64,000 nt of DNA, from the IMG/VR virus record IMGVR_UViG_3300030419_008158, positions 186,001-250,000 of that record; one strand, written 5' to 3'. Positions 967 to 44,105 of the stretch are shown here, piece by piece. Both the position numbers and the translations under genes were made by a program. Positions within the stretch are counted from its first letter, which is position 1. Each line of letters opens with the position of its first letter. The notes under the pieces were generated by a model, which was given only the letters and a program-made list of their open reading frames with translations, searched no databases and had not been told where the DNA came from.

Positions 967-981
967 GTTGTTTTTTCCTTC

Positions 982-1371
982 TTACGTCATCTCGACAAAT
1001 TCGTCAAAGTCACCAGCTGCGTAAGGATCACCCCCTGCATACCAGTTGACAAACCAGTCCTTGAGCATTCCAACATCACCCGCGACGTCGAGCATGCTGT
1101 ACCCGCTTGGGCCGGTCCCCCTGTCTGTAAATCTCAGACCACGATATCGGGGGTTTCTTGTCATCTGCTTGAATGGACCACTCTCATCACGTATTTCCCC
1201 GTGTTCGTCCATCATGTCTAGGCCTCGAATTATTCCCTGTTGACCGGTTGGCTCAGCTGGTCCTCGCATCTTGATAGCTTGTTCAGCGATACGACGGACC
1301 TTCTGTTCAGCCAGGACCTTGGCTTTCTCTTCTTTGATAATTCTTCGAAGCTGTTTCTTTGTGATTCTCAT
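982..1371 (-). CDS. leader-family A protein
   Basis: Start trimmed to MRITKKQLRRIIKEE; TAATG overlap with upstream gene. Confidence 0.8.
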   Translation of the reverse strand: MRITKKQLRRIIKEEKAKVLAEQKVRRIAEQAIKMRGPAEPTGQQGIIRGLDMMDEHGEIRDESGPFKQMTRNPRYRGLRFTDRGTGPSGYSMLDVAGDVGMLKDWFVNWYAGGDPYAAGDFDEFVEMT

Positions 1372-1784
1372 TAGAAAAAAGCTCCTATTATGTTTAGCCA
1401 TGTGTCAAGGGTAAATCTGTCGCCGGCATCTGGGTCCATTTCGTCCGCAAGCTCATCGTCCCTGACATGCGTTACACCGTATGTGGATCTAAGCCAGTTG
1501 GCCAGCGCGACATGATCAGCCTTTGAGTCCAGATCTCCTTCCCACCAGACTGTCTTAATGCCTGGCTTGAGCTCAGGATGTGAGTCTGGGTATTGAATTA
1601 CAATACCGGAATTTTCAAGAGTACCAAGGCCGCTGGGAGGCGATCTGTAGTCTATCACTAGTGTTTCACCACCAGCCTGCTCCAATAGTTTCCTGCGGAC
1701 AATTCGACGGACCTTCTGCTCAGCCAGAACTTTGGTCTTCTCTTCTTTGACTATTCTTCTAAGTTGTCTTTTTGTGATTTTCAT
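1371..1784 (-). CDS. leader-family A protein (double leader)
   Basis: Start trimmed to MKITKRQLRRIVKEEKTKVLAEQKVRRIVRRKLLE. Confidence 0.8.
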   Translation of the reverse strand: MKITKRQLRRIVKEEKTKVLAEQKVRRIVRRKLLEQAGGETLVIDYRSPPSGLGTLENSGIVIQYPDSHPELKPGIKTVWWEGDLDSKADHVALANWLRSTYGVTHVRDDELADEMDPDAGDRFTLDTWLNIIGAFF

Positions 1785-1795
1785 TCTGTATCCTT

Positions 1796-1912
1796 TTATG
1801 CTACGTTGCACTTGCCCAGGCAGCTCTCACACGAGCAACAACCGCAGCAGCAGCAGCAGTGTGAAGATTTAAATAAGTTGCGTAGACGATGAAAAAATAG
1901 ATTTGCTGACAT
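1796..1912 (-). CDS. 38-aa cysteine-rich peptide (10 Cys)
   Basis: MSANLFFHRLRNLFKSSHCCCCCGCCSCESCLGKCNVA; AGGAG RBS 8 nt upstream; fills the intergenic gap. Confidence 0.7.
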   Translation of the reverse strand: MSANLFFHRLRNLFKSSHCCCCCGCCSCESCLGKCNVA

Positions 1913-1945
1913 GGCGTCATCTCCTGTGGTTTGTATTACGAGATG

Positions 1946-1952
1946 TAAATAT
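1946..1952 (-). promoter_or_regulatory. ATAYTTA motif (putative late promoter)
   Basis: ATATTTA about 34 nt upstream of 1912 start. Confidence 0.5.
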
Positions 1953-1985
1953 CACAGTGCGGAGAAAATGCCGCTTGCGGCGAGA

Positions 1986-2396
1986 TCATTTTTCTCCGCG
2001 AGCCTCGTCGATGGCCTCAAGTGTCTTGGTCAGAATTTGCAGCGCGAGATTGTCTTTGTCCGCTGCTTTGCTCATTTTGTGAAGAGCTTCGACCAGATCA
2101 CCCATTTGATCGGCGTTCTCTTTAATTCGACCGATCGCATCATCGAGCGCCTGAAATTGATCGTCGTGTGCTTGCGCTTTTAGAACCATCATATCCTGTG
2201 TGCTCATGCTCGGCGCGGAATAGTGATTCTGAACGACGGAGCTTTCCTCACGATCAGATCTTTCGGCGACGGGCGCTGATGAAGGGGACGTCGACGTGTC
2301 CTGGACTCTCTCTGGATGTTGCTGCGTCTTCGACGACTCTTGCGCCGGCTGCACAACGTATGGATTTAGAAGCGGTGATACTGAACTGACTGTCAT
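1986..2396 (-). CDS. hypothetical protein, low-complexity N-terminus and helical C-terminus
   Basis: ORF track 1986..2450; start trimmed to MTVSSV. Confidence 0.65.
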   Translation of the reverse strand: MTVSSVSPLLNPYVVQPAQESSKTQQHPERVQDTSTSPSSAPVAERSDREESSVVQNHYSAPSMSTQDMMVLKAQAHDDQFQALDDAIGRIKENADQMGDLVEALHKMSKAADKDNLALQILTKTLEAIDEARGEK

Positions 2397-2453
2397 TTTT
2401 GGCCTGTGTCTTTCCCGGTCGGGATCATAACCTGTCAAGGGCAAATACAACGC

Positions 2454-2460
2454 TAAGTAT
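2454..2460 (-). promoter_or_regulatory. ATAYTTA motif (putative late promoter)
   Basis: ATACTTA upstream of 2396 start; a TTGTAC-N17-TATAAT variant also lies at 2494..2522. Confidence 0.45.
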
Positions 2461-2779
2461 CCTTTTTCATGCGCGCAAGCTTGCGCCTATAAAATTATAC
2501 TCGAAATCGACAACCTGTACAACAATATTCTTAAGAGCCGGCTGTGCCGGCTCGAGCGAGCTAGCGCAGAAGAAAAGAGGCCGCGGCCTCGTCATCCCGT
2601 GGCGCGAAACGCCACCAAATCCGAGGCCAAACAGATGTCAACCCGTTTTCGACACCGCGTAGAGGCTCCAGATTGAATCCAGAAAGCTCTAGGTGTGTCT
2701 CTAATGAATCGGGCATGGAAAAATGGGTTTACCTAAGGGGCGTTCGATAAGATTCCTTAGAAGATCACCCAGAGCGAGA

Positions 2780-3217
2780 TCAAGTCGACCGGTCCCAGGG
2801 ACGATTTCGAGTTCCGCCGCCGTAGGGTTTTTTCGGTCGAGGTTTGGGTGGGTTCGCCGCTCTTTTCTGCTTGAGCGCGTCCCGATAGGCCAGCACCAGA
2901 TCTTTTAGCTCGGCGCCGGTCGGATATTCTATCCCGGGGCGCATTTTTCTCGCGTGAAAGGACGCCGCGTTCGGACTAACGCCCAAAGCGCCAGCCAATT
3001 CGCGCGCCGCTTGCACGTCTCCGGGCGCCGCGACCATGCCGCTCCACAGCCTCGCCAAATCGTCCAACTCGCCGTCGGATCGTCTTGAGAGAAAACCCAA
3101 CCAACTTTTTAGCGCGAGGTCTCCCTCTCGGCGCAGCCGATCGAACTCCTCGATCGCGTCTTGAGTCTCCAGGGTTTCGGCAATGATCCGCCGCAGCTGT
3201 TTTCTTGTGATCTTCAT
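2780..3217 (-). CDS. leader-family A protein
   Basis: MKITRKQLRRIIAETLE leader. Confidence 0.8.
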   Translation of the reverse strand: MKITRKQLRRIIAETLETQDAIEEFDRLRREGDLALKSWLGFLSRRSDGELDDLARLWSGMVAAPGDVQAARELAGALGVSPNAASFHARKMRPGIEYPTGAELKDLVLAYRDALKQKRAANPPKPRPKKPYGGGTRNRPWDRST

Positions 3218-3423
3218 TCTATGCACCCCGTTTTTCGGCAGTCGCCCGCGTGTTTAGCGCAGGGATCTTTCTTCATGTCTCGATTTAGAATGGTTCGACC
3301 CTTGGGAGCCCGAAGGCCCGCAATGAGCTCCTCGAACAGCTTTGGGTCCAGACCGGGAGGTGTGCCCTCCAGCTTTTCGGCTAGCTCGCGTATTTCGGCG
3401 AGACGACTCTTTCTATCGCTCAT
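3214..3423 (-). CDS. hypothetical protein
   Basis: MSDRKSRL...; GGAGA RBS; ATGA overlap downstream. Confidence 0.6.
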   Translation of the reverse strand: MSDRKSRLAEIRELAEKLEGTPPGLDPKLFEELIAGLRAPKGRTILNRDMKKDPCAKHAGDCRKTGCIE

Positions 3424-3425
3424 AT

Positions 3426-3746
3426 TCAGTTCTCCAATTCTTGTCTGTGCAGCTTGTAGCCCAAGTGATCCTCGATCTCGTGCATGTCGTCCAACATGGC
3501 AGCTAGCTTCGACCGCACCCACTCGGGCAAATGGTCGTCGTCCTCCAATCGATCGTGCAGAGACTGCGCTCTGCTGGCGATATTGAAAAGAGCTCCCCGC
3601 GACATTCGCGCGACTCCGCTGTCGATGGGATGGCCGACAGGATCGACTTTGGGCGCAGCACTCGCCGGCGGCAACGCTAACGCGCCCGCCTCCGCGGCCA
3701 CGCACTCCCTAACAATATTTCTCAGTAGACCTCTCGTGGCGCTCAT
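3426..3746 (-). CDS. phage protein with LPEWVRSKL helical motif and degenerate leader
   Basis: GLLRNIVRE leader; RMSRGALFNIA...LPEWVRSKLA resembles a motif recurrent in large-phage hypothetical proteins. Confidence 0.7.
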   Translation of the reverse strand: MSATRGLLRNIVRECVAAEAGALALPPASAAPKVDPVGHPIDSGVARMSRGALFNIASRAQSLHDRLEDDDHLPEWVRSKLAAMLDDMHEIEDHLGYKLHRQELEN

Positions 3747-3748
3747 TT

Positions 3749-4453
3749 TCAGCTCTCCTCGGAGCGATCGACGACAGCGTTCGCGCTCTCCAGAGCATCC
3801 AAAACAATGGCGCCCTCCTCACCCAAAGAATCAGCCAATCGCGATAAGCGGCGGTGCGCGATGTCCAGCGCGTTCGGGTTCTGTCTGAGCACTAGGTCCG
3901 CGAACTCCTCGTCCGCCCCGAACTGCACGTACATGTTCACAACGGCTTCCACCTGCTCCTGCACGGCGCCGCCCAGCTTGGCGTACTCCCGAGCAAAGTC
4001 GATAAGCAGGGAGCCCGACTCCTCTTCGCCACCAAAACCGTACTGCTCCGAGACAAGGCTGAGGTTGGTGTTCTTGCGGAAATTTCGACCCTCGCGCACT
4101 ACTGCCAGATACCCACCCGGAAATCCTGTCTTGAATCCTAGTTGTTCCAAGTACGCCTGGAACTCGTACGTGCGATCGCTGCTTCCGAAGCCCTCCTCGC
4201 TGTCCGCCAAGCTGTATGCCAGGTCGTCCGCGAAGTCCACGGCCATGGTGTTGATTCTCTGTCTCCCCACCGACTCGATCTCTTCGGGTGTGAGCAGATC
4301 TTCGGCGGTTCGCACGTATTCGCCCGGGTACACGACGTACTGGGTGTACTCGTCGGGGCCGTTGGCACCGAGGCCTCCGCGCTCGTCGAGCCTCCGCGTG
4401 AAAGCGGACTGCGCGCGCACGATCTCTCTAATCATCTCTTTGGAAATTTTCAT
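3749..4453 (-). CDS. leader-family A-like acidic protein
   Basis: MKISKEMIREIVR leader; 234-aa ORF. Confidence 0.75.
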   Translation of the reverse strand: MKISKEMIREIVRAQSAFTRRLDERGGLGANGPDEYTQYVVYPGEYVRTAEDLLTPEEIESVGRQRINTMAVDFADDLAYSLADSEEGFGSSDRTYEFQAYLEQLGFKTGFPGGYLAVVREGRNFRKNTNLSLVSEQYGFGGEEESGSLLIDFAREYAKLGGAVQEQVEAVVNMYVQFGADEEFADLVLRQNPNALDIAHRRLSRLADSLGEEGAIVLDALESANAVVDRSEES

Positions 4454-9784: not shown

Positions 9785-9799
9785 CACCCCCACCCGAGA

Positions 9800-32653: not shown

Positions 32654-32654
32654 A

Positions 32655-32990
32655 CTAAAACCCTACTGACTCTCCGCAACCACATGATCTTGTTGCCTTA
32701 GGAGAGTTGAAGGTAAACCCAGAAGACATTATCGTCTCTTCGTAGTCAACCTCTGTACCCATTAAGAATAGATATGATTTTTTGTCACACAAGACACGAA
32801 GACCAGGTTTTTCAATTATGTGATATAGACTTTCGTCTTCAGGGGGTTCAATGAAATCTATTTGATACTTGAAGCCGGAACAACCTCCTCCTTGAAGGCC
32901 TATGTGCAACGGCCAATCGTTAGGTTTATCCATTCGTGATCTTATTTCTTTCGCCTTCTGGATTGCTTTATCTGTTATCGTCAATTTCAT
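32655..32990 (-). CDS. iscA: A-type Fe-S carrier (IscA/HesB family)
   Basis: GGGCSGFKY, SCGCGES. Confidence 0.9.
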   Translation of the reverse strand: MKLTITDKAIQKAKEIRSRMDKPNDWPLHIGLQGGGCSGFKYQIDFIEPPEDESLYHIIEKPGLRVLCDKKSYLFLMGTEVDYEETIMSSGFTFNSPKATRSCGCGESVGF

Positions 32991-35023
32991 TTAGGGCTCC
33001 ATAGTTTGTTACGGTCAGTGTCGTAGATCGGAACACCAAGGTCTAGTGAAGCCAACATAATCTTCTTCACTACACCTGCCGAGAAATAATCAATGTCTTT
33101 AGCTGTGTTGCCACTAGGCGGGCTCTGACCGCCAGAAATTAGTTTTTCTGCTGTTTTGAGAATAGCGTCTGTAACATCATCCTTTGCAACGATAACCCCT
33201 CTAGGTCTCCAGTTATCCACCAGGGCCTCATTATTCGACCACTCTGCACCTACCGGGTTCCACGTTGACTGGTCTAAAACGTATGGGATACCATCTCTTG
33301 CCATCTTCTCCATATATTCGTTTCCGCGCTGGAGCTGGCCGTATCGGCTGTAATCTTTTGACACAGAGGGTCGTTTGTTTCTGCCAGAAGACCGATCTCT
33401 CTGTGCAATAGCCTCCTCGTCACCTTCTGGCCCTACACCATAATCCCCGTAAAACCCTGAATACATTTTGTCTTGATCGTTTGTTGCCAGCGTTATTCGA
33501 CCTTTGATCCACAGCCCGTATGGGAGACCGGCTGCTGGCTCAAAGCTATCACCAGGGAGAGTCATTGTGGTAGAAAGCTCGTCCTTGCCTCTTCCTTTCA
33601 TGTTCTCAATGCCATAGAAATCATCAGTCCAGTGGACAGTGTCTAGGGTGCTAAGAAATTGGTGGTCTGCATTCTTGTTGAATGCGCGCTTGATATCTCT
33701 GCCAGCCTCTTTGCCGATTTGCCCACCGAAGAACTGATCGCCGAACTTATCCGATGCGGCAAGGTCATGCACGAAGCCCATGGGGTCTTCCTTGAGAAGC
33801 TGTCTCACGTATTTTCTTAAAACGTTTTCTTTCATAGCATCCTTCTTTAGCCTAATCTCTACGTCGCTCCTCCCGAAGATCCCGTCTCCGCCAAGCGCGC
33901 TTGTTATTTTGTAACCTAGAGACTCAATGCTGGCGACATCTTCTGGAAATTGTTGGGCGAACTCTTCGACTCCCATGACCGTCTTTTCAGGCATGAGACC
34001 GGTGCCGAATATTAGTTCCTCAACGCCCTCTTCCCTGTAGCTTTCGTCGAAGTTCCTAAACTCTCCACCCATAGCCTTGATGAGATCGATGAGAGGCCCA
34101 TGATCAGCATACATTTCCTTTTCGGCTTGTTTTCTTGCGCGGTCGAGGCCTCGGTGTTCGACCTCGAAGATATTGAACATTGCCACCTTTCCCTTGAGTG
34201 GGTCAAGCACTGTGTCAAACATGTCTTTGAACTTCTTTTCGTATTGCTGTGCCCTTTGGTCGTGCTTAGACCCGGGATTTAATTCGATGATATCACCGTT
34301 TTTCATGTTAAGTTGTTCTGGAACGCCGAGAACCAAGCTTCCATCGTTCTTTAGGTAGTCAGCAAAGATGTCGCCAAATAGATCAAAGTCACCACTGGGT
34401 AGTTCGATACCCGGAAACAGCTCACTCAGCAAGACGTCTGGGTTTGAGACACCAAGTCTGCGACCAGTTTTCTTCATTGAATCTCTAACATGTTCGGCTT
34501 CCATGGTTCCACCACCATGAGACAGCCAGACCAGTTCCATCATATACTCTTTTATAAGAGTTGTGAATGGGTCTTTAGCGCTGAATGATTTCGCATCACT
34601 ATTCTCAAGCATGTGGTGTAGATCATGCGCCAGATAGTGAGGGTTAACGTCAGCTATGAATGTATCTCCACCGGCAGGAACTTCAAAAGACTTAGGGTAG
34701 ACGTAAAGAAGATTGATTCCGTCTGGATCCATCTCCTTCTGTATTTTCGGGTATAGCTTTCCGATGTTTGAAATGTCAGTAAGGGCAACTTGTCCTCTAC
34801 TCTTGAACCCTGATACTTTACCCTGTATTTCATTTGGCAGTCTATGCGCCCAGCTGAGGTCGTCTGTGTGTGCGACATAGATGTTGACGCTCTGTGGGAT
34901 TGCTTTGAAGTAGTCAGCAACCTCTTCGCGGACCATTACATCGTCGTCATCCTGCTTGAGATATTCAAAGTCGTCTAGAGGGACTTCCATGAGAAGGTCT
35001 CTTATGTATTCGTGTAGTAACAT
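32987..35023 (-). CDS. leader-family B multidomain protein; C-terminal domain paralogous to 40915..41730
   Basis: MLLHEYIRDLLME leader; internal MKENVLRKYVRQLLKE; HDLHH. Confidence 0.8.
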   Translation of the reverse strand: MLLHEYIRDLLMEVPLDDFEYLKQDDDDVMVREEVADYFKAIPQSVNIYVAHTDDLSWAHRLPNEIQGKVSGFKSRGQVALTDISNIGKLYPKIQKEMDPDGINLLYVYPKSFEVPAGGDTFIADVNPHYLAHDLHHMLENSDAKSFSAKDPFTTLIKEYMMELVWLSHGGGTMEAEHVRDSMKKTGRRLGVSNPDVLLSELFPGIELPSGDFDLFGDIFADYLKNDGSLVLGVPEQLNMKNGDIIELNPGSKHDQRAQQYEKKFKDMFDTVLDPLKGKVAMFNIFEVEHRGLDRARKQAEKEMYADHGPLIDLIKAMGGEFRNFDESYREEGVEELIFGTGLMPEKTVMGVEEFAQQFPEDVASIESLGYKITSALGGDGIFGRSDVEIRLKKDAMKENVLRKYVRQLLKEDPMGFVHDLAASDKFGDQFFGGQIGKEAGRDIKRAFNKNADHQFLSTLDTVHWTDDFYGIENMKGRGKDELSTTMTLPGDSFEPAAGLPYGLWIKGRITLATNDQDKMYSGFYGDYGVGPEGDEEAIAQRDRSSGRNKRPSVSKDYSRYGQLQRGNEYMEKMARDGIPYVLDQSTWNPVGAEWSNNEALVDNWRPRGVIVAKDDVTDAILKTAEKLISGGQSPPSGNTAKDIDYFSAGVVKKIMLASLDLGVPIYDTDRNKLWSPK

Positions 35024-35024
35024 C

Positions 35025-36182
35025 TTATAATCCTATAAAGATAACGTCGCCTGACGAGTTGTACTCTCTTGCCAAGGACGCCCAGACTCGCTTAGCTTCT
35101 GGTGAAGTTCCTGACCCTATTGTGCAGTGATGTGCTCCAATAAACACACCACCCGATGATCTAGAGTATTCTACTGCCTTGTCAATAAAGGCTTTGTAGA
35201 TTTGCTTACCGTATCCCTTGCCTCTGTTTTCAGGGTTGTTGATCCAGGCATTGTCAACATCATAGAATTTTGGTCGGAATACCGCTTGTCCTATCTCTAC
35301 TTCTTCGTACTGACCAGTTTCTTCGTTTTTAACAATGTCGGTTCTTGGTTTTGCGTTCGCTACATACTTCTTTTCTGCATCGAGATATTCAGGTGTCTTC
35401 ATTAGAGCGTCAACATCTGATTGGCACTCTTTGAATCCAAGGTTTGACCCTCCTTGAGCATATCCGATGTTAGGTAGATCAACACGAAAGTAGTAGCTGT
35501 CACCTCTGTGCTTGAACGTAGCAGCCTCTGTCAAGGTTGCTGTGTATCTACTGTCACCTTCATATATGAACTGATCTACGTGATTAAAGCTTAAACCTTG
35601 AGCTGCGCCAAGAATTTCAACTTCAGCCATGCATTCGTTTCTGGCACCACCTGCAAGATCTGAACCACTCCAGCTGGGTAATTCATCTTCTAAATCAGGA
35701 ATCCAAAACCCGTAATCCTCAAGATCGTCAATCAAAAGCTCACTTACACCAATTGATTCAATGTCTTCTTCTTCTAGATCTCGAATGTCTCTAATGTCGT
35801 TGTCGATCATGTGCTTGACAATCTTTACGATTGACGCGCGGTCAAAACAAACACTCGAGTCCATAACGTCTCTGAAAAATCCGTATCCTTTGTCGAAGAA
35901 GGTCGACTTGGAAAGCAAATCATCGAACAGCTCTTCATCGTAGTCCAGCTTTTCGAAGTAGAAGTTCTTCAGTGCAGATTCTGAAACCATGCCGAGAGTA
36001 TCTTCACCGTTGAACAAGAATAGTACCCTGGAATAATCTTCTGCTGCAGTTCTTAACATATCACCGATATCGAACGATGTGCCGCTTTCGTATTCTGGCT
36101 GGATGTCAACTACGACAAGACTACCCTTTGATCCTTGCTCTTGCTCGAGTAAAACCCTTATATATTCACGCAGCAGCTTCAT
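35025..36182 (-). CDS. leader-family B protein: isochorismatase-like N-domain plus GNAT-like C-domain
   Basis: MKLLREYIRVLLE; LVVVDIQ...GGARNEC; ENRGKGYGKQIY...SPEAKRVW. Confidence 0.65.
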   Translation of the reverse strand: MKLLREYIRVLLEQEQGSKGSLVVVDIQPEYESGTSFDIGDMLRTAAEDYSRVLFLFNGEDTLGMVSESALKNFYFEKLDYDEELFDDLLSKSTFFDKGYGFFRDVMDSSVCFDRASIVKIVKHMIDNDIRDIRDLEEEDIESIGVSELLIDDLEDYGFWIPDLEDELPSWSGSDLAGGARNECMAEVEILGAAQGLSFNHVDQFIYEGDSRYTATLTEAATFKHRGDSYYFRVDLPNIGYAQGGSNLGFKECQSDVDALMKTPEYLDAEKKYVANAKPRTDIVKNEETGQYEEVEIGQAVFRPKFYDVDNAWINNPENRGKGYGKQIYKAFIDKAVEYSRSSGGVFIGAHHCTIGSGTSPEAKRVWASLAREYNSSGDVIFIGL

Positions 36183-36775
36183 GATATCACCAGCTTTCCT
36201 GCAGCCTCAAGCGCACTCATTGTTGTGGGTGGCTTTGTGTATCTCTTGCTAAGGGGTGATCCCTGAAAGTCAACGACCTTTGGCATACCTGCGCTGCTTC
36301 GTCCGACTGTGGATGCATGTTGCTCGCAGTTATCTTCTTCTTCCGGTGTAATGGTGTTTTGCAAGTCATCAAGCTGGACGCTTTGTACGTCACTACGGTT
36401 TGACAGATAATAATCCCAGACTTCTCTTGCGGACGGTGAGACGTGATCACGATCGGAGACTAAGCCCCCACCGTTTTGAGTCGCCCATTCCATCATTACA
36501 TCATATAGCATAGGGCCCCAGCCCTGGGAGGCATGTGATATTACAACTTCCCAGGCACCGCCGCACGGATGAGCAGGCTTCCTGACAGCTATTTTTCCAC
36601 CGATTGGAGCTGTCGAATGAATATAGGTTCCGTAGTCAGGGTTTTTCACAACATAGCGAACTACAGCATGATCACCCTTGTTTAGGACCTCTACAAACAC
36701 GTCTTCTGGTAAATCAGCAGGCCCTTTAGCAGCCTCGGTCAGCAGTTCTCTTATGTACTCGCGGAGTAGGTTCAT
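36179..36775 (-). CDS. leader-family B protein, GNAT-like
   Basis: MNLLREYIRELLTE; QGWGPMLYD...SD..VSPSAREVW. Confidence 0.62.
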   Translation of the reverse strand: MNLLREYIRELLTEAAKGPADLPEDVFVEVLNKGDHAVVRYVVKNPDYGTYIHSTAPIGGKIAVRKPAHPCGGAWEVVISHASQGWGPMLYDVMMEWATQNGGGLVSDRDHVSPSAREVWDYYLSNRSDVQSVQLDDLQNTITPEEEDNCEQHASTVGRSSAGMPKVVDFQGSPLSKRYTKPPTTMSALEAAGKLVIS

Positions 36776-37557
36776 CGCCCTGTTATCTCCTTCGCCTGCT
36801 CAAGCGTTTTAATGTTCCAGCCTTCGGGATTTAGATCATACTTTGGGTGCAGACCTTGCATCACTAAGTCCAGCCAATACTCCCACAGCTCACCAGATTT
36901 TTCCTGAAGCTGGTTGCGTGATATACGGATTGGTATCATCTCATCCAGCAAAGTGGCAGCTTTAGCTCTGTGGTGACCGTCTGAAAACATGAGAGATCCA
37001 TCAGCATAAACTCGGACATCCAGGGGTTCCCTTATCCCACCAGCAAAATGTTTTTCAGCCCAGGCGAGTTGCTCTTCCTTGGGCAGCTTGCGAAAGTTTT
37101 GCCAATACCACTCGGTCCGGTACTCACCTGTATCTGTGTCTAAAATCTTGGCGGGTACCATCAACTGTTGGCCGGCTGTTTCAAGAAGCACAGACTCTTG
37201 CATCGTCCATGGGCCAGCCTGACCGCTTTTCAAACAGTTGACCATTGTCTCTTCGGCTGTGTATTCGTTATGAATTTCTGGTTGGAATATGTCGTAATAC
37301 GTTTCTCTGTCAATCCCACCTGGTTTTGTGTCGTGGGTCTGCCAGTCAAATATCATATCACCTTTTTCAACCCAGGCATGAAGATAACTCTCGCCGCTAA
37401 ACTTATCAGTCACCCTACCATGAACAACCTTGAACCTGGTTAGGTCTGAGAATTCTTCTTGAGAAGAACCCTGAGCCATCTTGACAGCATGCGGATAGCA
37501 CTGGCCTATCGCAGTCTCAATCAGCAGACCTCTTATGTACTCGCGGAGCAGGTTCAT
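36772..37557 (-). CDS. leader-family B protein: transglutaminase-like Cys-His-Asp domain plus ParB/Srx-like domain
   Basis: MNLLREYIRGLLIE; GQCY...HAWVE...FD; PLDV...SDGHHRAKAA. Confidence 0.62.
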   Translation of the reverse strand: MNLLREYIRGLLIETAIGQCYPHAVKMAQGSSQEEFSDLTRFKVVHGRVTDKFSGESYLHAWVEKGDMIFDWQTHDTKPGGIDRETYYDIFQPEIHNEYTAEETMVNCLKSGQAGPWTMQESVLLETAGQQLMVPAKILDTDTGEYRTEWYWQNFRKLPKEEQLAWAEKHFAGGIREPLDVRVYADGSLMFSDGHHRAKAATLLDEMIPIRISRNQLQEKSGELWEYWLDLVMQGLHPKYDLNPEGWNIKTLEQAKEITGR

Positions 37558-38774
37558 TAGTCTTCGCCCTTTGATACTGTCGTGTCATTATATTTCTTTT
37601 TCATCCAATTTGACAACGCTTTTGTCACGTCTATCTGAGACAGTCTTGTGTCGTCCGGAAACGATTTTAGGTTGTTGAGATAATCTTTAAAAAATAAATT
37701 CTCAACAGCATCATCGAGAACTCTAGACACATCATCATCAACGTCTAATGCTGCAAGAGCTCCTGTCTCAGCCTCGTCCGGAAGCTTGTACGCATTTTTC
37801 GCAGCCATGGCAAGATTTTTTGCTGTTGCGAAACCTGGAATCATACCCTGGATTTCATCAACGACGATATCGGTTACTGTAGCAGCCAGTCCCTTGGCAC
37901 CCTCCTTACCCTGCTTCTTAAGCTGAGCGTATTTGATCACCGCTCTTAGGTCGCCAACTGTCTTAACATCGTTAATTGACGTCATCTTTTTCTTTTGTTT
38001 TTTCTCTACAAGAATTTTCTGTAACAGCGCTTCCCTTATGTAACTTCTTATGATTGATTCATTCATGTACTTCTTGAGAAGGTCAATAAGCTCCTTGTCT
38101 TTACCCCTTGGTTGTTTACCAAGGTAGGGGACGACTAGTCCTTTTCTATCCCGCGGACCCTTGACCACCTCTGCAGGGCCCTCCTGTGCGTACTCATCTT
38201 CAAATTTTGTTAGGGCTTTCTTGATCTCTTCTTGGGACATCATCTTGATCGCAGCTTCGGGATGATTGGTCGATCTAAGTCCTGAAATGCTAGATGCGCC
38301 GTCCTCATGTTTGTGCGCGCCACGAATACCTTTTTTTTGTTTCGCGCTGTAATAAGAAGAGTCAACCGAGTCCCACAGCTCGTCTTTATCCATGGTCTTG
38401 CCCAAGAATTCTATCTCATCCCCAGCCTCTTCCCACACCTCTTGTGATATGAGAACTTCTGACCCTGTATCAAACCGGTTCACTCCTCCCGATTTTTCGA
38501 TGACCCAGTGCGGAACTTTGTAGGCATACACGTTACCGCTAACACCATGATTCCAGGCGATATCTGTTGGGTTGGGTGTTAGAAACACACCGGATTTAAC
38601 GGGACCCTCTATCCAGTCTCTGGACCAGCCTTCCTCTCCTTTTGCACCCCAGCGCTCGGCCGGTTTTGGTGAAGCGGGGCGTTTGCCGATATGATAAAGT
38701 GTACGCTTGTCCTTCTGGCCTCGAATCGATTTTTCAGATAGAATATCTCTTATATGTTTTCGAATCAAATCCAC
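37557..38774 (-). CDS. leader-family B multidomain protein, possible ART-like N-domain
   Basis: (GTG)DLIRKHIRDILSE; TLYHIG...GVFLT...SEVLI; internal MNESIIRSYIREAL. Confidence 0.6.
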   Translation of the reverse strand: MDLIRKHIRDILSEKSIRGQKDKRTLYHIGKRPASPKPAERWGAKGEEGWSRDWIEGPVKSGVFLTPNPTDIAWNHGVSGNVYAYKVPHWVIEKSGGVNRFDTGSEVLISQEVWEEAGDEIEFLGKTMDKDELWDSVDSSYYSAKQKKGIRGAHKHEDGASSISGLRSTNHPEAAIKMMSQEEIKKALTKFEDEYAQEGPAEVVKGPRDRKGLVVPYLGKQPRGKDKELIDLLKKYMNESIIRSYIREALLQKILVEKKQKKKMTSINDVKTVGDLRAVIKYAQLKKQGKEGAKGLAATVTDIVVDEIQGMIPGFATAKNLAMAAKNAYKLPDEAETGALAALDVDDDVSRVLDDAVENLFFKDYLNNLKSFPDDTRLSQIDVTKALSNWMKKKYNDTTVSKGED

Positions 38775-38784
38775 TTTAAAGTTC

Positions 38785-40041
38785 CTAAAAGCATATTTCA
38801 CTACTCATAACATCTTCTAAATAACCAAATGTATTTTCTGGTTTACCGTTCAAATCAAAAGTCATTCCGGAGGTCGCATCAGCAAGAGGCTCCCATCCGC
38901 CGGTTATGTCTTTGCTCATGTTGTCTATGAAAGCGTACAGCTTTATATCATCAATTGATTCGAGCATCATCAATAGCTTTTCCTGTGTTATCGTACTGTT
39001 AGTATTGTATGACTTACCGACTTTTGATGCAGGAATTAGAAAACTTTGTCCAGGCTCATCAGTAAAAACTATGACAATTTTTTTGCTATTCGCTCGCCAG
39101 TCCACATAAAACTCATCAAGAGGCGGATCGGACTCATCTATTACATTGCCCACCCATACAGGCCATAAAAGCTCTTCCCACTGGTATGGCAAAAAAGCAG
39201 ATATATTTCTTAGAGATAAATAAAGTGCGTCATATAACATCTCATACTGCCCTATCATGTCATATGTTGTTACGTCACCTAGCACATCCTGAAATTCCCC
39301 TATTGCTTGCAGGTTACTAGCCAAGTACAGAAAATTATGTTTTCCTGGCGTGTCGCCGGCGTTTTTAGGGCCCACAATAAGTGCCCACTTTACATGACTT
39401 GATTCTTTATACTTTTCAGAGAAAGCACTTGCAAGTGCATAGACAGATTCAATTTCTGGTAACATAGATGCAGACAAATCAAGTATGATCAGTACGTCGA
39501 CGTCTTCTTTTTCACACTCATCGTAAACGCTAATACTTGAGTCTTCTTCAGGGTCAGAAAGTGCGTCTTCAGGTTGCTCTGCTGCGATGTCTTTGACGTC
39601 TTTTTCTTCTCTTTCACCTTGTGTAAAGCTTCCCTTGCAGAGACCCTCTTCTAAGTACCCTTTAACGCAGTATGTTGTATAAAAACCTTCGTTTCCGTCT
39701 TCTGTGACGCAAGGCTTTTCGCCCAAATTATAGTGGTGAGGATCACACTCTAGAAACTCTTTGCACTCACTCATACTCAACACTATCGGCGGGTCCACAC
39801 AGACATCTTTTGTAATCTCAATTCTCATTAGAGGTCCACTAACACCAGGGCAAAAATAATATTCTGTTCTTATACATAGTTTCTCGTATTCTTCTTGAGA
39901 ATCAACTATTATAATTTCGCTGGTGTCGTTGTCATAATTCACATGTGTATGGTAGACAGGGTTTTCCATAAACCATTCCGAACAACTTACGTTGGTAAAA
40001 GACAGCAATATCATCGCAAGAAGTATTAGTGTGTGTTTCAT
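38785..40041 (-). CDS. putative lipoprotein with Cys-rich N-domain and VWA domain
   Basis: Signal/lipobox NVSC; ILDLSAS MIDAS; VFTDE. Confidence 0.72.
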   Translation of the reverse strand: MKHTLILLAMILLSFTNVSCSEWFMENPVYHTHVNYDNDTSEIIIVDSQEEYEKLCIRTEYYFCPGVSGPLMRIEITKDVCVDPPIVLSMSECKEFLECDPHHYNLGEKPCVTEDGNEGFYTTYCVKGYLEEGLCKGSFTQGEREEKDVKDIAAEQPEDALSDPEEDSSISVYDECEKEDVDVLIILDLSASMLPEIESVYALASAFSEKYKESSHVKWALIVGPKNAGDTPGKHNFLYLASNLQAIGEFQDVLGDVTTYDMIGQYEMLYDALYLSLRNISAFLPYQWEELLWPVWVGNVIDESDPPLDEFYVDWRANSKKIVIVFTDEPGQSFLIPASKVGKSYNTNSTITQEKLLMMLESIDDIKLYAFIDNMSKDITGGWEPLADATSGMTFDLNGKPENTFGYLEDVMSSEICF

Positions 40042-40571
40042 GCTTTCACCATCATGGGGCTTTCTTCGTCTTTCAAGAGGATGAGATCGAATTGTGATTC
40101 CTGAGATGCGAATTTATCTTTTCTCTTAATGAAGAGGTATATCGCCGTGATTGGCATAGCGGCACCAGGTTCCATTCTTATTTCGTTTTCGTCCCAGAAC
40201 AGCCGCGGTTCTTGGCCCGCAGTAATTGGATCGTAGCCTTGTCCATCGTCGATAGTAGCCTGAAGGATTACATGAATTGTCTTGCCTCTATTCGAAGCAT
40301 CCCACACATCAGCAAATCTAACAGCAGTATGAAAAGTCTCAGACCACGAAACACCGGTGGATTCATTTTGTAGCTGACCGAGGATTAATCTTGCTCGCTC
40401 GTCGCCGCTGATTTTACCCCTACGGATTGCTGACGCTAATGATGCACTGGGCATTGTAAGCTTCATCCCTCTGTATACGTTTTTCTTGCCCTTTGTGAAG
40501 GATGGTTGTCCGTAAGCTGATGCAATCCTTTCGTTCAATAGAGACCTTATGTATTCGCGGAGAAGTTTCAT
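40038..40571 (-). CDS. leader-family B protein, R-S-E-type ADP-ribosyltransferase-like
   Basis: MKLLREYIRSLLNE; VYRGM, GVSWS....AVRFA, ENEI. Confidence 0.62.
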   Translation of the reverse strand: MKLLREYIRSLLNERIASAYGQPSFTKGKKNVYRGMKLTMPSASLASAIRRGKISGDERARLILGQLQNESTGVSWSETFHTAVRFADVWDASNRGKTIHVILQATIDDGQGYDPITAGQEPRLFWDENEIRMEPGAAMPITAIYLFIKRKDKFASQESQFDLILLKDEESPMMVKA

Positions 40572-40918
40572 TATATCTTACTCAAACTATCCGGCCATTT
40601 TTTCCATGTTCGACTGTCACCGTCAGGCTGAACCATGACGAATTTTCCGCCGCGGCGCACAACAGTCCCCACCTTTAGAGAACCGTTCTTGAGCGTCCAT
40701 TGGACCCGGTCGCCTTTTTTGAATCCGGCCTTTAATTCATTTCGCTTTCGCTTGACTGTGTCAGCCACAGCTGTCCATATGACTCGAAGATCAGCTATTG
40801 GCATCTCTTCCATTTGATCCAAGATAACTTGAACGTTTGGGTTCTGGGCAGGTGGTTCTACGGGAGCATCTGCCGTTTCCTGAATCAATTTTCTTAGTTG
40901 TCTCTTAGTAATTTTCAT
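40571..40918 (-). CDS. leader-family A protein with C-terminal SH3/KOW-like module
   Basis: Start trimmed to MKITKRQLRKLIQE; FKKGDRVQW...GTVV. Confidence 0.75.
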   Translation of the reverse strand: MKITKRQLRKLIQETADAPVEPPAQNPNVQVILDQMEEMPIADLRVIWTAVADTVKRKRNELKAGFKKGDRVQWTLKNGSLKVGTVVRRGGKFVMVQPDGDSRTWKKWPDSLSKI

Positions 40919-41730
40919 ACCCAACCCCTCGATGTGAACTCTTTGTGAGTCATGACTTGAATGTCCAGGCCGGCTTCTTCCGCCAGATCCTCCCATTCTT
41001 CTGCTTCTGTTGTATCGGGAACTTTCGGTTCGGTTCGTTCGGAACCCGGGTGCCACTCCGGAGGCAATCTGGTAAGTGGACCATCAGGTACGATCAACGC
41101 CATAGGTGTCCAGTTATCAACCAGCGCCTCATTGTTCTGTGTGCTTCGAAATCCGCCAAAGCTTGGATCCCAGTCTTCTTCATCCAGGACTAGAATCTTG
41201 TACTCTTCATAAGCTTCTGGGTCGTATGTCGATTGAACGCCCTTGTTGATACCAGACTGCTTCTTCATATCCGGGAATACTTCTTCGTATGCCAGTGTTC
41301 CCCCTGTGTAAAGCTGGTCCATATCATTTGCCAAAAGCGTGATATGGCCTTTGATAAGAATGCCATAGTCTCCGAATTTACCTGCACCCTTGATCTCACC
41401 TGGTAGATAAGCTGAAGCTGATAATTCATCCTTGGAGCTAAATGATCCGTCAAGAAAAGCTTTCATCGTCTGAGGGCTTCGAAACCAGTGAACAGTTACC
41501 AAGCTGTCAAGAAACCCGCGATCAGCACTTTTGGCAAACGCCTTCTTGAGATCTCGCCCCTGTGAACGTGCTTGCTTAACTAGTTCAACATGTTCTTCAT
41601 CGGTAGCGTATACACTGGGGGTTGGATTGTTCTCTTTAGTACCTGCTGCGGCGAGATCTTTAGCTAACTGTTTGCGTTTAGCTGCGTCTTCAATCAGCAG
41701 ACCTCTTATGTATTCTCGGAGGATGTTCAT
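40915..41730 (-). CDS. leader-family B protein, paralog of 32987 C-domain
   Basis: MNILREYIRGLLIE; TVHW, KDELS, IKGHITL, NNEALVDNW. Confidence 0.78.
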   Translation of the reverse strand: MNILREYIRGLLIEDAAKRKQLAKDLAAAGTKENNPTPSVYATDEEHVELVKQARSQGRDLKKAFAKSADRGFLDSLVTVHWFRSPQTMKAFLDGSFSSKDELSASAYLPGEIKGAGKFGDYGILIKGHITLLANDMDQLYTGGTLAYEEVFPDMKKQSGINKGVQSTYDPEAYEEYKILVLDEEDWDPSFGGFRSTQNNEALVDNWTPMALIVPDGPLTRLPPEWHPGSERTEPKVPDTTEAEEWEDLAEEAGLDIQVMTHKEFTSRGWV

Positions 41731-41731
41731 T

Positions 41732-43045
41732 TTATGTCTTATCTCCGACTATAGTATCTATCAGCGCTTTTCTTCTGTCCTTATCAGCCCACGCTTTTTG
41801 CGCGTACGGGTCTAGCGAGTGAAGAGGGTCGAAATACAAAAACTTTTTTCCTGGCTTTACGCTGGGTGCTGTGTATACGCTTATCCCAAAATTCCTGTCG
41901 TATCTCTCAAAAGAATGTACGCAACGCTTTCCACCGCCGCCGGGAGCATCGACAACAAACGTGGGTGTGTTAAATCCAGCAGTAACTCCTCGCACACTCT
42001 TCTCAACATCTATCGCAGTCTGAACTGACGTTCTCATATCCTCAGTACCAGCTGTTAGGTCATGAATGTAGACATAGTAAGGCTGGATGTTAATGTAGCT
42101 TAGCTTTTTCACCAATGATATCATGCTGTCGGCAGAGTCGTTCACGTGATTCTGAAATACAGACTGATTTCTGACTTTTACTCCCCTCGAAAATAAAACG
42201 TTCATGGCGTCTTGTGTGATACCCGTAATTTCATTTGAGTGATTGAAATGCGTATGAATACATACCTCTTTGTACTGTTTTCTTGCCTTGCTAGTTATCC
42301 TACACACAGCATCTGTCCACGCTGCGTCTGTCAAGATCTTCATCGGCATAATCGCAAGACCCTTCGTAGCAAATCGGAACCGCCTAATGTGATCAATCTT
42401 TAGAAGCTCTTCACCTAAGTCTTTTACCTGAGAGGCTTTTAAGCGATAAGAATCTCCTCCGGATATCACTACATCCTGAATTTGCTTGTTTTCGCGGAGG
42501 TACTTGAACATATCATTCCACCGATCTCGAGAGGCTTTAATAGATACTTTCTCCGCTGTGTCTGTGTCTCCCCCGACGGCGTATGCCCGAGTGCAGTATC
42601 GACAGTATACAGGGCACGTGTCTAGCGCAAGAAATAGCACCTTATCTTCGTATCGATGAGTCAGACCTTTTACAGGAGAGTCTGCCTGTTCACCCAAGCT
42701 ATCGAAACGTAACATAGGATGATCAGGTTGAAGATGTGAAGCAAGCGTCAGGAATTGTCTTCTGATGGGACAATTGTCAGGATTGTTCCAATTCATCAAC
42801 GAAAGAAGATAAGGCGTAATACGTGTCGTCATCGGTGCTCTTCTAAAACCTTCTTTAGCGTCTTCTAGAAACTTTTTATCCACAAGATCCTGAATTGTAT
42901 TTAGAAGCTTCCTGTGATTTGTAATTGCATTCTTTTCTTGCCACTTATGATCAACAAAAGTGTCATAGTCGATATCCCGCCATGCAGGAATAGCTCTCCA
43001 AAACTCATCGCCTCTGAATTCTGTGCTGTCTGAAAAGACGTTCAT
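41732..43045 (-). CDS. kamA: KamA-family radical SAM / PLP aminomutase (lysine 2,3-aminomutase-like)
   Basis: GLTHRY, CPVYCRYCTR, ISGGD, NQSV, QPYY, DAPGGGGK. Confidence 0.88.
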   Translation of the reverse strand: MNVFSDSTEFRGDEFWRAIPAWRDIDYDTFVDHKWQEKNAITNHRKLLNTIQDLVDKKFLEDAKEGFRRAPMTTRITPYLLSLMNWNNPDNCPIRRQFLTLASHLQPDHPMLRFDSLGEQADSPVKGLTHRYEDKVLFLALDTCPVYCRYCTRAYAVGGDTDTAEKVSIKASRDRWNDMFKYLRENKQIQDVVISGGDSYRLKASQVKDLGEELLKIDHIRRFRFATKGLAIMPMKILTDAAWTDAVCRITSKARKQYKEVCIHTHFNHSNEITGITQDAMNVLFSRGVKVRNQSVFQNHVNDSADSMISLVKKLSYINIQPYYVYIHDLTAGTEDMRTSVQTAIDVEKSVRGVTAGFNTPTFVVDAPGGGGKRCVHSFERYDRNFGISVYTAPSVKPGKKFLYFDPLHSLDPYAQKAWADKDRRKALIDTIVGDKT

Positions 43046-43770
43046 GCAAAACCTCCAGCGTTAGGATATCTTATCTTTGCATATTTTCTATACTCACTTC
43101 TTATTTTAAGCATAAAGGGATGTAGACTCTCTTCAGAATAACCGTTCGCTTTTCCCGTTTCAAAAATTCTGTACAGCTCATAATCTATCACATCACTCAA
43201 AGGCACCTTGTTGGATTTTGCTCTCTTCATAAACCCAGCAATGTGTGCCTTTACTTCGGCGGGACAAAGATAGTATTCAGCAGCATTTGAAAGTGACTTC
43301 CAAATCACATCAGCTGTGGGTGTCTTTTCTTGACAATCCATAAGTTCCCACGTCTCTTGCCCTGAGTGCTCTAGTTCATGTCTAATAACATCAACTAGCT
43401 CGTCATTAATGTTACTAAGAACTTGATCCGGATAATCTCGAGGCAAAACAAGATTCACACGTAAATCTGACGTCGATCTTTGGGACTGTGATGCTCCTAA
43501 ATCATACTCATAAGCAGCATCTGCGTTGACAGATTGTCCCTCTGTTACATGGATAATCACATCCCTAAGATAATCTATTTCTGTAATTTCCGGTACATTC
43601 TGCAGCCTAAAATAGGCTTCTCCAGTTTGTCTAAAATGCTCTCGAACATCTTCATCTTTTAGAGCACTTAGAACATGGCGCTTTATTATTGTCGTATATC
43701 TATCAAGCTTGCGACCGGTAATCACAGCCTCAAACAGCAAAGAGCTTATATAGTCACGGAGAAGCTTCAT
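43042..43770 (-). CDS. leader-family B protein with zincin-like HExxH motif
   Basis: MKLLRDYISSLLFE; RHELEH; YY..PAEVKA. Confidence 0.65.
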   Translation of the reverse strand: MKLLRDYISSLLFEAVITGRKLDRYTTIIKRHVLSALKDEDVREHFRQTGEAYFRLQNVPEITEIDYLRDVIIHVTEGQSVNADAAYEYDLGASQSQRSTSDLRVNLVLPRDYPDQVLSNINDELVDVIRHELEHSGQETWELMDCQEKTPTADVIWKSLSNAAEYYLCPAEVKAHIAGFMKRAKSNKVPLSDVIDYELYRIFETGKANGYSEESLHPFMLKIRSEYRKYAKIRYPNAGGFA

Positions 43771-44105
43771 GCACTGCCCCACTTTTTTGCAAGTCCTTCT
43801 GATATCAGGAATGCTCTTATATCAACATCGTCCATAACATATACAGTCGCCAACCAACGTCCGTACTTGCCCTTTCCGTGTGTCTCAATTGTTACTTCTT
43901 TACCTAGGCAGAGCTCTCTAACTCTGTCACGGGCTTTTATCGCCAAAGCTTTTTCTTCGAGGTCTTTCGTTCGAATCTCAGGTGTATCAATTCCTATGAG
44001 CCTAAGTTTTATTTTTTTGGCCCACATCTTAAAGCCCAAGTCAACTTCAGCTGTAAGCGTATCACCATCATAAACCTTTGTTATGATTGCTCTATATACA
44101 TACAT
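43767..44105 (-). CDS. thermonuclease (SNase-like) family protein
   Basis: VYDGDT, RLIGIDTPE, GKYGRWLA. Confidence 0.9.
   Translation of the reverse strand: MYVYRAIITKVYDGDTLTAEVDLGFKMWAKKIKLRLIGIDTPEIRTKDLEEKALAIKARDRVRELCLGKEVTIETHGKGKYGRWLATVYVMDDVDIRAFLISEGLAKKWGSA

Follow-up and report, generated by a model that had tools for sequence, protein, structure and literature searches.

Does the gene cluster at the center of this stretch of phage DNA encode strings of proteins that are packaged into the virus head and then cut apart? The stretch comprises 64,000 nucleotides (positions 186,001 to 250,000) of the IMG/VR virus record IMGVR_UViG_3300030419_008158 and is hereafter called the window. 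Between window positions 32987 and 43782, otherwise unrelated open reading frames (ORFs) begin with the same kind of short leader peptide, and in four ORFs leader-like motifs also recur internally. The original prediction, made from the letters of the stretch, read these ORFs as polyproteins: tagged genes that became fused and are separated again by the maturation protease. Comparison with related phages supports the core of that interpretation, namely that the modules are leader-tagged, are fused and split at the leader, and are probably re-separated by the head protease. We put the probability that window 32987-43782 encodes phage-head cargo strings, cut apart by the head protease and reshuffled at the leader, at roughly 0.6, judging from sequence comparisons.

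Leader-bearing genes of a marine jumbo phage

Leader A (M[KN]LLREYIRxLLxE) is an amphipathic peptide of 13-14 residues that forms the N-terminus of eight ORFs on the minus strand of the cluster (Table 1). A second type, leader B (MKITKRQLRRIIKEE), heads about 25 more ORFs genome-wide, including those at window 358-4453 and 40571-40915, and about 35 ORFs of this genome bear a leader. All leaders in the window end in L-x-E. Related contigs contributed 41 unique N-terminal and 10 unique internal leader copies. Window ORFs are named here by their length in amino acids (p678, p414, p385, p271, p261, p246, p198, and p177), and L-numbers (L004-L008, L010, L039, L040, and L041-44) denote related viral contigs or loci, 42 of which were compared.

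The complete record (CheckV grade) is 284,429 bp long, and read-index searches traced its sequence to marine metagenomes of several studies. Its genes include those for a T4-type prohead protease and for a major capsid protein of the gp23 type. Among the matches listed, no named phage has a capsid protein more than 33% identical to this one, and the top match, at 48%, belongs to an unannotated 484-kb uncultured phage. Based on these T4-type protease and capsid genes, the capsid identity values, and the marine read matches, the source is an uncultivated marine jumbo phage that belongs, distantly, to the T4 superfamily.

Internal leaders lie at module boundaries

We confirmed the positions of the four internal motifs on the minus strand, with ATLTE shifted by 1 nt from its earlier placement. 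The p678 copy (MKENVLRKYVRQLLKE, with the core NVLRKYVRQLLKE) holds two protease-type motifs, MKE and LKE, and is followed from D413 by the C-module (DPMGFVHDLAASDK). As had been proposed, this domain is a homolog of the standalone gene at 40915-41730, which encodes p271 (BLASTP E = 2e-26 for p678 segment 400-618), and the alignment sets N400-E412 of the internal leader on N2-E14 of the p271 N-terminal leader. The same internal leader also aligns with the N-terminal leaders of a 269-aa standalone ortholog in L040 and of 42 metagenomic standalone homologs. Likewise, the internal leader of p414 (MNESIIRSYIREALLQKILVE) has homologs in L004 (MKESVVRQYIKDLLVE/) and L005 (MNEAVVRRYIHELIVE/); here and below, a slash marks the putative cut.

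The motifs of p261 and p385 are shorter. In p261, SVLLE/TAGQQ aligns with SLLLE/TADQQ at the end of the leader MNILREYIRSLLLE of a standalone ortholog in L039, and in p385, LTE/AATFKHRG aligns with LAE/APTLNHKG at the leader end (..LLAE/) of a standalone ortholog in L040. MQESVLLE and ATLTE represent the final five residues of the leader, and the p261 and p385 joints therefore lie inside the leader. Five different partners behind the p385 N-module keep h-x-E (h, hydrophobic; x, any residue) at the same offset: LTE, LTE, LSE, MTE, and LTE.

As a motif alone, the leader is weak. With a hidden Markov model (HMM) of the seven N-terminal leaders, the p678 copy reaches just 5.8 bits (E ~4.5) in the six-frame translation of the genome, and the p414 internal copy is absent from the 30 best matches there. 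Because the motif statistics are insignificant, we argue the reality of the internal copies from homology, that is, from the leader-end alignments above and from homology breakpoints.

The motifs had been said to separate distinct domains, and breakpoints in dozens of related sequences do fall on them. Matches from tblastn and blastp end at residues 206-231 or begin at 216 of p385, end at 116-122 or begin at 121 of p261, end at 260 of p414, and end at 409-415 or begin at 388-402 of p678. In an IMG/VR scan, all 30 loci matching p385 do so only up to residue 190-249, mostly ending at 207, and loci matching p261 cover either residues 1-117/118 or residues 122-261. A HMMER scan of 1.8 billion representative proteins with p678 returned 240 relatives (E up to 0.001). 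Among the best 150 of these, only P0001, a 670-aa metagenomic cluster representative that is 75% identical to p678, has the two-module architecture; the others match either residues ~2-415 or residues ~390-678. In many of these, the match starts at the relative's own residue 2-4, with its N-terminal leader aligned on the internal leader of p678.

Predicted structures place the domain boundaries at the same points. In the AlphaFold2 (AF2) model of p678, a linker helix (residues 399-411, predicted local distance difference test [pLDDT] 64-69) stands between a strand (388-394) and the confident C-domain, with a poorly modeled N-module (pLDDT mostly <60). In the p385 model, ATLTE opens a stretch of pLDDT <50 (213-252) just past the last strand of the N-domain (200-207).

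Table 1. Leader-bearing genes, internal motifs, and head genes. Positions refer to the window unless marked as genome positions; residue ranges are in amino acids.
Feature	Position	Strand	Leader or motif	Modules and remarks
p678	32987..35023	-	MLLHEYIRDLLME (aa 1-13)	678 aa; N-module 14-396; internal leader 397-412; C-module 413-678
p678 internal motif	33788..33835 (aa 397-412)	-	MKENVLRKYVRQLLKE	M-K-E/N-V-L-R-K-Y-V-R-Q-L-L-K-E/D; core NVLRKYVRQLLKE
p385	35025..36182	-	MKLLREYIRVLLE	N-module ~15-206; tail EGDSRYTATLTE; C-module 220-385
p385 motif	35526..35540 (aa 215-219)	-	ATLTE	L217-T-E219, the last three residues of the leader, retained
p198	36179..36775	-	MNLLREYIRELLTE	Single-module cargo gene
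p261	36772..37557	-	MNLLREYIRGLLIE	N-module 15-117; mini-linker; C-module 127-261, ParB-like, DGHHR
p261 motif	37180..37203 (aa 119-126)	-	MQESVLLE	Collapsed linker M-Q-E/S-V-L-L-E/T
p414	37557..38801	-	..DLIRKHIRDILSE (leader-like)	N-module 24-245; internal leader 246-266; C-module 267-414
p414 internal motif	38004..38066 (aa 246-266)	-	MNESIIRSYIREALLQKILVE	M-N-E/S-I-I-R-S-Y-I-R-E-A-L-L-Q-K-I-L-V-E/K
p177	40038..40571	-	MKLLREYIRSLLNE	Single-module cargo gene; ortholog in L004
Small leader-B gene	40571..40915	-	MKITKRQLRKLIQE	Starts at internal Met of ORF 40571-41056
p271	40915..41730	-	MNILREYIRGLLIE	Standalone paralog of p678 C-module
p246	43042..43782	-	MKLLRDYISSLLFE	Module with HELEH motif
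Leader-B gene cluster	358..4453	-	MKI[ST]KRQLRRIIKEE	Higher-GC stretch
gp23-type major capsid protein	genome 76443-78323			PF07068, 215 bits
T4-type prohead protease	genome 82430-83035	-		Pfam Peptidase_S77, PF03420, 91.8 bits

The same modules are split, fused, and permuted in related phages

To follow single modules, we compared the window proteins by BLASTP with all open frames of the 42 related loci. The p385 N-module stands alone, with a stop codon at query residue 206, in more than 25 distant phage contigs. Its C-module is found on its own with a leader (L006, L040, and L044), behind the p261 N-module (a 272-aa ORF of L004), and behind the p385 N-module (the window), which makes three contexts. 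The p261 N-module is standalone in six loci (L010, L040, and L041-44), where it ends GPW(R)-stop, and the p261 C-module is standalone with a leader in L039. In L004, the p414 N-module together with its internal leader (query residues 10-260) is joined to the p678 N-module, while L005 and L040 pair it with other partners; the p414 C-module is the N-terminus of a different gene in L004. Across L004-L008, the two p678 modules are encoded apart, in exchanged order, or combined with different partners.

Split and fused forms of the same modules, which the original prediction had proposed to look for, are thus found in L004, L005, and L006. In L005, the p678 C-module has a 292-aa gene and a leader of its own, immediately following a 714-aa ORF that links the p678 N-module via SIRETILRQYIRNLLLE to a p246 homolog. 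In L006, a single ORF has the two modules in reversed order: leader, C-module, QNNIKEMRTYVRQLLME, N-module, and MKESVLRTYIRGLLAE-DVR-stop. L004 encodes a 1,114-aa ORF with four or five modules, in the order unassigned part, MENIIALYLRGILSE, p414 N-module, MKESVVRQYIKDLLVE, p678 N-module, IKESVLRKYIRQLLKE, p678 C-module, TQKELRQYVRGQLILE, and a further part. The idea that modules are shuffled among partners holds well here, with each module in at least three different contexts.

Fusion had been attributed to the loss of stop codons between tagged genes. We mapped contigs of four marine runs on the cargo region and found that a contig of X10, from a related phage in a third study, joins 37205 to 35535 in frame and motif to motif (p261 GPWT to p385 LTE/AATF). 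Metagenomic joints below 95% likeness derive from other organisms, and this one represents a relative with a different arrangement. Its position at the motifs points to recombination at the leader. Loose contig ends also cluster on leader DNA, at 36741/36775 (the p198 leader), 37517/37558, 37206, and 38079/38102. A strict stop-codon-loss pair would show the same two modules as neighboring genes in one phage and as a fusion in another. A search among related phages yielded no such pair; L005 comes closest, with an inserted module plus a stop codon and a new leader between its p678 N- and C-modules. Simple stop-codon loss is not the best reading of the fusions, and the shuffling looks recombinational, taking place at the leader.

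A further candidate joint, 36076 to 37516 in X3, was set aside: one of its sides is just 34 nt long, and it may reflect divergence rather than deletion.

The long ORFs could also be assembly chimeras or products of sequencing errors such as lost stops and frameshifts. This is an uncultivated metagenomic assembly, and its many near-identical leader repeats could mislead an assembler. However, contigs of the probable source run span all four junctions with no differences, and in the independent marine sample X2 the p385 and p261 junctions are identical. No indels were seen in the contigs of any of the four runs. P0001 shares the p678 architecture, and the alternative fusions in other phages are long open frames as well. 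Altogether, an artifact is hardly credible.

Linker anatomy and predicted cleavage sites

We aligned 66 members of the p678 C-module family, 42 standalone and 24 internal, on the Glu that precedes the domain (P1). This residue is Glu in 64 of 66 members, while P3 is Leu, Ile, or Val in all 66. In the standalone members, the leader is mostly exactly 14 residues long, with Met at P14 in 29. The internal copies share a core of Arg at P10 and P6, Tyr at P8, Ile or Val at P7, and Leu at P4 and P3. At the position of the Met of N-terminal copies, 15 of the 24 have Glu, with Ser or Asn next, and 13 have Ile, Met, Leu, or Val two residues before that Glu. The element at internal positions is therefore h-x-E/S-h-h-R-x-Y-I-R-x-L-L-x-E/. 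The window linkers of p678 and p414 fit it, and that of p261 (MQE/SVLLE/T) is the element minus its middle. Other phages have LRE/S, LKE/S, LSE/G, or MKE/S at the junction after the p261 N-module.

The upstream half of this element bears on a further proposal, that the internal leaders begin with Met. Three of the four window motifs do start with ATG, and if these codons were working start sites, the downstream module would be translated alone as a nested gene, with no proteolysis between modules. A Shine-Dalgarno-like GAAGGA lies six nt upstream of p678 M397, and T4 gene 21 has an internal start. Yet homologous junctions have Ile, Val, or Leu at this position (GIKES, SIRET, NIKEM, DVKES, LRES, LKES), followed by a conserved Glu-Ser that N-terminal leaders lack. 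A product started there would be M-x-E-S plus leader, two residues beyond the uniform 14-aa N-terminal leaders. Furthermore, ATLTE is without any start codon, and no Shine-Dalgarno-like sequence precedes the Met codons of p414 and p261. Internal starts are thus very unlikely to account for the motifs, although initiation at p678 M397, with its GAAGGA, is conceivable. As homologs carry Met, Ile, Val, or Leu there, the internal Met looks like the P3 residue of a second cleavage-type motif, h-x-E/S, which is a better reading than a relic start codon.

If the modules are cut from each other, stray sites within them should be disfavored. The tripeptide [LIM]xE is rarer within the window cargo modules than in shuffled sequences (20 observed vs 28.9 +/- 4.7, p = 0.036), and also within the cargo modules of related loci (91 vs 106.8 +/- 9). 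In non-leader ORFs of the same genomes, it is commoner than in shuffled sequences (878 vs 741 +/- 23; 187 vs 163 +/- 10). This depletion lends modest, consistent support to selection against stray cut sites.

These patterns also bear on whether the ORFs are intact multidomain (polyvalent) proteins that are not cleaved, with leader-like helices that serve as scaffold-binding or spacer elements and whose copies may increase avidity toward the prohead core. Polyvalent proteins of 2-15 domains have been described in phages, and some, including the virion RNA polymerase of N4, are packaged without processing. The entire leader is conserved internally, beyond L-x-E, and its role therefore exceeds the marking of a cut; in addition, two related ORFs terminate in a leader. 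Intact proteins do not readily explain why the truncated p261 and p385 linkers keep the h-x-E parts only, why h-x-E holds its offset behind the p385 N-module despite five partners, why P1 Glu is nearly invariant, or why [LIM]xE is depleted within modules. Moreover, every capsid-targeting sequence (CTS) is removed in T4. We consider uncleaved proteins unlikely.

Head protease and proposed route of the cargo

The prohead protease shares 31% identity, as well as LGExxHP and SSRGxGS blocks, with the gp21 of a T4-like phage. Its N-terminus carries LLTE-9 where the counterpart of the T4-like phage carries LLIE-9; in T4 gp21, LIE-9 is a possible autocleavage site. In the capsid protein, VLKE60/A61 aligns to FLTE65/A66 of gp23 from a T4-like phage (Sf21), with Leu, Glu, and Ala invariant, and is the predicted maturation site, at which the protease would cut. 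The head module that holds the protease and capsid genes also has portal, scaffold-like, and small core-like genes, and two small proteins adjoining the protease gene have leader-B-like N-termini. In the cargo cluster, the (L/I)-x-E site expected for a T4-type protease closes every leader and every junction.

Could the leader instead have nothing to do with the capsid? It might be a helix for another kind of sorting, for oligomerization, or for regulation (membrane association or degradation, for instance) that a paralogous family shares, with an incidental L-x-E. The distance between the cluster and the head module would suit this, and no module is recognized as structural by Pfam or PHROGs. 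However, the leader resembles the T4 CTS in length, position, ending, and its M-K-x-x-x-E-aromatic-I pattern; M1, K2, E6, an aromatic residue at 7, and I8 are common to MKTYQEFIAE and leader A, although both are too short to separate homology from convergence. The same ending recurs at the aligned capsid maturation site and at the protease N-terminus, small proteins by the protease gene have leader-B-like N-termini, and type A, type B, and hybrid leaders interchange on members of the p678 C-module family. Taken together, a role unrelated to the capsid seems quite unlikely.

We propose the following route, in which head targeting, cleavage at leader and linker sites, and delivery to the host are modeled on T4. 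The leader would dock the protein onto the prohead scaffolding core, and the gp21-like protease would then cut after the terminal Glu and remove the leader. In strings, a second cut after the upstream h-x-E would excise the linker as a small peptide and free both modules. Truncated linkers would retain the cut sites alone (M-Q-E/S-V-L-L-E/T and L-T-E/A). The mature modules, with predicted N-termini at D413 (p678), A220 (p385), T127 or S122 (p261), and K267 (p414), and at residue 14 or 15 in single-module genes, would stay in the head and enter the host along with the DNA, like the T4 internal proteins (IPs) and Alt. Because every module starts with the same coding sequence, recombination in this common DNA could swap, fuse, split, or reorder modules without harm to either, and it would thereby produce the same modules in many arrangements among related phages. 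In its fullest form, this amounts to "beads on a string," where the leader would be at once a loading signal, a self-excising linker with two protease sites, and an in-frame recombination joint that allows combinatorial shuffling of effectors. We hold this extended version tentatively, at a little under even odds.

Several observations weigh against head cargo that is cut and reshuffled. The cargo cluster lies about 135 kb away from the head genes, including the portal gene. The tripeptide [LIM]xE is common, at about 1 per 60 residues. The specificity of the protease is taken from T4 and one aligned capsid site, Met at P3 falls outside the (L/I)-x-E rule assumed for T4, and the conserved Glu-Ser preceding internal leaders could be a helix N-cap instead. 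Leaders at the ends of ORFs in L006 and L040 are not predicted by the simple model. Complex prediction for the protease and a 39-aa linker peptide gave a score of 0.00, which is no answer and hence evidence neither way. The T4 late promoter (TATAAATA) is not enriched, with 1 occurrence in the window vs 1.7 expected, which carries no information on expression timing. Finally, a search of 50,697 GenBank phage records gave no match to the cluster DNA, p271, or the p385 N-module, and no cultured relative.

If strings are indeed loaded and cut, a simple genetic grammar would let large marine phages build and reshuffle the protein sets that they co-inject with DNA. In the beads-on-a-string version, it would cost marine T4-like jumbo phages almost nothing to combine, split, or reorder injected effector modules, and such combinatorial shuffling is not known to have been described for any phage. 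Injected proteins are likely the first weapons against host defenses, and such a grammar would help explain the fast diversification of cargo. In uncultivated T4-like phages, head cargo could also be sought by way of the leader sequence.

Candidate functions of the cargo modules

Pfam and PHROGs gave nothing above cut-offs for whole cargo ORFs or separated modules, a PDB sequence search with a C-module homolog gave no match, and Foldseek matches to both AF2 models (p678 and p385) have E values of 0.01 or worse. The p678 C-module (residues 458-676) weakly resembles CteC/DarT ADP-ribosyltransferases (VIA Z 5-7.3), and its ESM Atlas neighbors include OspC and DarT/PARP clusters; it possibly has an ADP-ribosyltransferase-like fold. 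The p385 N-module matches an isochorismatase/cysteine-hydrolase fold with Foldseek probability 0.8-0.98 at E values of 0.04-0.14, which makes this a lead only. The p385 C-module has a GNAT-like RGKGYG motif (GNAT E = 0.1, sub-threshold), and the tentative ParB-like assignment of the p261 C-module comes from phrog_1033 (E = 0.0019) and its DGHHR motif.

Further observations on leaders and neighboring genes

Leader B also occurs inside ORFs, at genome positions 185415-186140 (ending at window position 140), 271033-271650, 274326-275036, and 283162-283902, sometimes with Ile replacing Met (KIKITKKQL). One ORF combines an N-terminal leader B with an internal A-like leader (MTEADLREVIRNLLSE). The polyprotein pattern therefore appears genome-wide and with both leader types.

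Two related ORFs end in a complete leader followed almost immediately by a stop codon (L006 5998-8094, ..MKESVLRTYIRGLLAEDVR-stop; L040 3275-3811, ..MKESLLREYIRGLLEV-stop), and in L040 the next gene begins with its own leader. Such a terminal leader could be a C-terminal tag, like the C-terminal propeptide of T4 Alt, or the scar of a recent split.

The DNA of leader A has its own bias. In 40 unique leader DNAs, the Ile codon of EYIR is ATA in 37 of 39 cases (genome usage 30%), the Arg codon that follows is AGA or AGG in 36 of 36 (genome 60%), and the first Arg codon is CGC or CGT in 36 of 40 (genome 20%), while Leu codons are free to vary. These codon-conserved sites lie at window 34985-35023, 36138-36182, 36734-36775, 37516-37557, 40530-40571, and 41689-41730 and in related loci. 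The bias points to a constraint at the nucleotide level (CGY GAR TAY ATA AGR), which may be a core for recombination or gene conversion, or a pause site resembling a Shine-Dalgarno sequence.

Cargo genes overlap by stop and start codons (ATGA, TAATG; 36772-36775, 36179-36182, and 37557), with mostly weak Shine-Dalgarno sequences. The overlaps suggest translational coupling along the cluster, and where genes overlap in this way, the gain or loss of one base close to a junction would fuse adjacent genes. The L004 ortholog of the small gene at 40571..40915 begins with MKITKRQLRSLIQE.

Leaderless metabolic genes lie in or beside the cluster (32387-32990 and 41732-43045) and encode an Fe-S biosynthesis protein (HesB/IscA-like), a NifU-like protein, and a lysine-2,3-aminomutase-like radical-SAM protein. 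Also inside the cluster is a 418-aa protein (38785-40041) with an N-terminal hydrophobic, signal-like segment. Further out, auxiliary metabolic genes at window 26731-27771 and 47197-48651 encode adenylosuccinate synthetase and ATP-dependent PEP carboxykinase, and L006/L007 8-1939 includes isocitrate lyase- and malate synthase-like ORFs, as judged from their translations alone. A divergent tubulin/FtsZ-family GTPase (PF00091, E = 8e-5, under the curated cut-off) adjoins the cargo cluster in L005 too, and a staphylococcal-nuclease homolog lies near this gene (window 44526-45614 and 43767-44105 for the two). At the other end, window 1-10000 has a GC content of 48-57%, compared with ~40-45% in the remainder of the window, and holds leader-B genes, an AAA_5/MoxR-like ATPase (6402-7487), and a DUF2201 metallopeptidase/VWA-like protein (8122-9393).

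Comparison with known phage systems

The closest counterpart is the CTS system of T4, in which the CTS and the diversity of CTS-bearing internal proteins are textbook knowledge. In T4, gp21 trims 65 residues off gp23 and 10 off gp24, and IPI-III and Alt each lose a short N-terminal peptide to it. In the CTS MKTYQEFIAE, residues 4 and 7 serve targeting and residues 8 and 10 serve processing; with Asp at P1, targeting persists although processing is abolished. In a T4-like phage (Sf21), the gp23 propeptide ends FLTE65/A, and the gp24 propeptide is MAKINELLRE/S. The system described here similarly has a short N-terminal propeptide that is common to otherwise unrelated, fast-evolving proteins and ends (L/I)-x-E, along with a gp21-type protease and a gp23-type capsid protein with an aligned site. 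Unlike the CTS, the leader here is 13-14 residues long and has its own sequence types, A and B. While T4 IPs are described as cut once, beside the N-terminal CTS, the leader here recurs between modules within ORFs, with a second upstream h-x-E/S, giving putative natural multi-cargo strings. Engineered IPIII/CTS fusions, for which any protein will serve, are loaded, cut, and delivered in T4, and if our reading is right, these strings would be a natural precedent for multi-protein loading of a T4-type capsid, hitherto only engineered with the T4 CTS.

In the giant phages phiKZ, 201phi2-1, and SPN3US, many internal head proteins are substrates of a gp21-related protease, which cleaves after Glu and often more than once per protein; paralogs have conserved N-termini. 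The motif in phiKZ-like phages is S/A/G-x-E, and the extra cuts destroy long propeptides that are discarded. Here, P3 is Leu, Ile, Val, or Met, and both sides of a putative cut are separate modules that also exist as genes of their own.

T4-type hyperplastic regions provide a parallel at the DNA level. Modular shuffling there runs through conserved promoter/terminator cassettes (PeSLs; PMC2839356, PMC4122927), short sequences that flank variable genes and serve as recombination joints in T4-like genomes. The PeSLs are regulatory and non-coding and lie between genes, whereas the joint here is a coding leader, so in-frame fusions are also possible.

Polyvalent proteins of phages and conjugative elements (Iyer, Burroughs, Anand, de Souza, and Aravind 2017, PMC5512222) likewise combine at least two unrelated effector-type domains per polypeptide in architectures that vary among relatives, and an analogy to viral polyproteins was drawn in that work. 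Their characteristic domains include MPTase, ART, DdrB-like ParB, and GNAT. The repertoires overlap, as leads only, in ParB-like, ADP-ribosyltransferase (ART)-like, GNAT-like, and HExxH domains (HELEH, motif only). That class is tied to MuF/portal or type IV secretion system (T4SS) contexts, release is proposed to occur via embedded peptidase domains, and Alt-type ARTs of T4-like phages are stated not to be in genuine polyvalent proteins (PMC5512222). We detected no MuF/portal or T4SS fusion or linkage and no embedded peptidase in the cargo ORFs or their window neighbors. In the present cluster, a repeated, putatively targeting leader with predicted prohead-protease sites forms the joint, and the proposed protease is the separate head-maturation enzyme.

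A literature search, with most subscription journals outside its coverage, returned no paper with these leader strings and none on a CTS-like leader reused as a linker between modules. Altogether, the proposed system would combine two known kinds, the capsid-targeting sequences of T4 and the polyvalent proteins of phages, in a new form.

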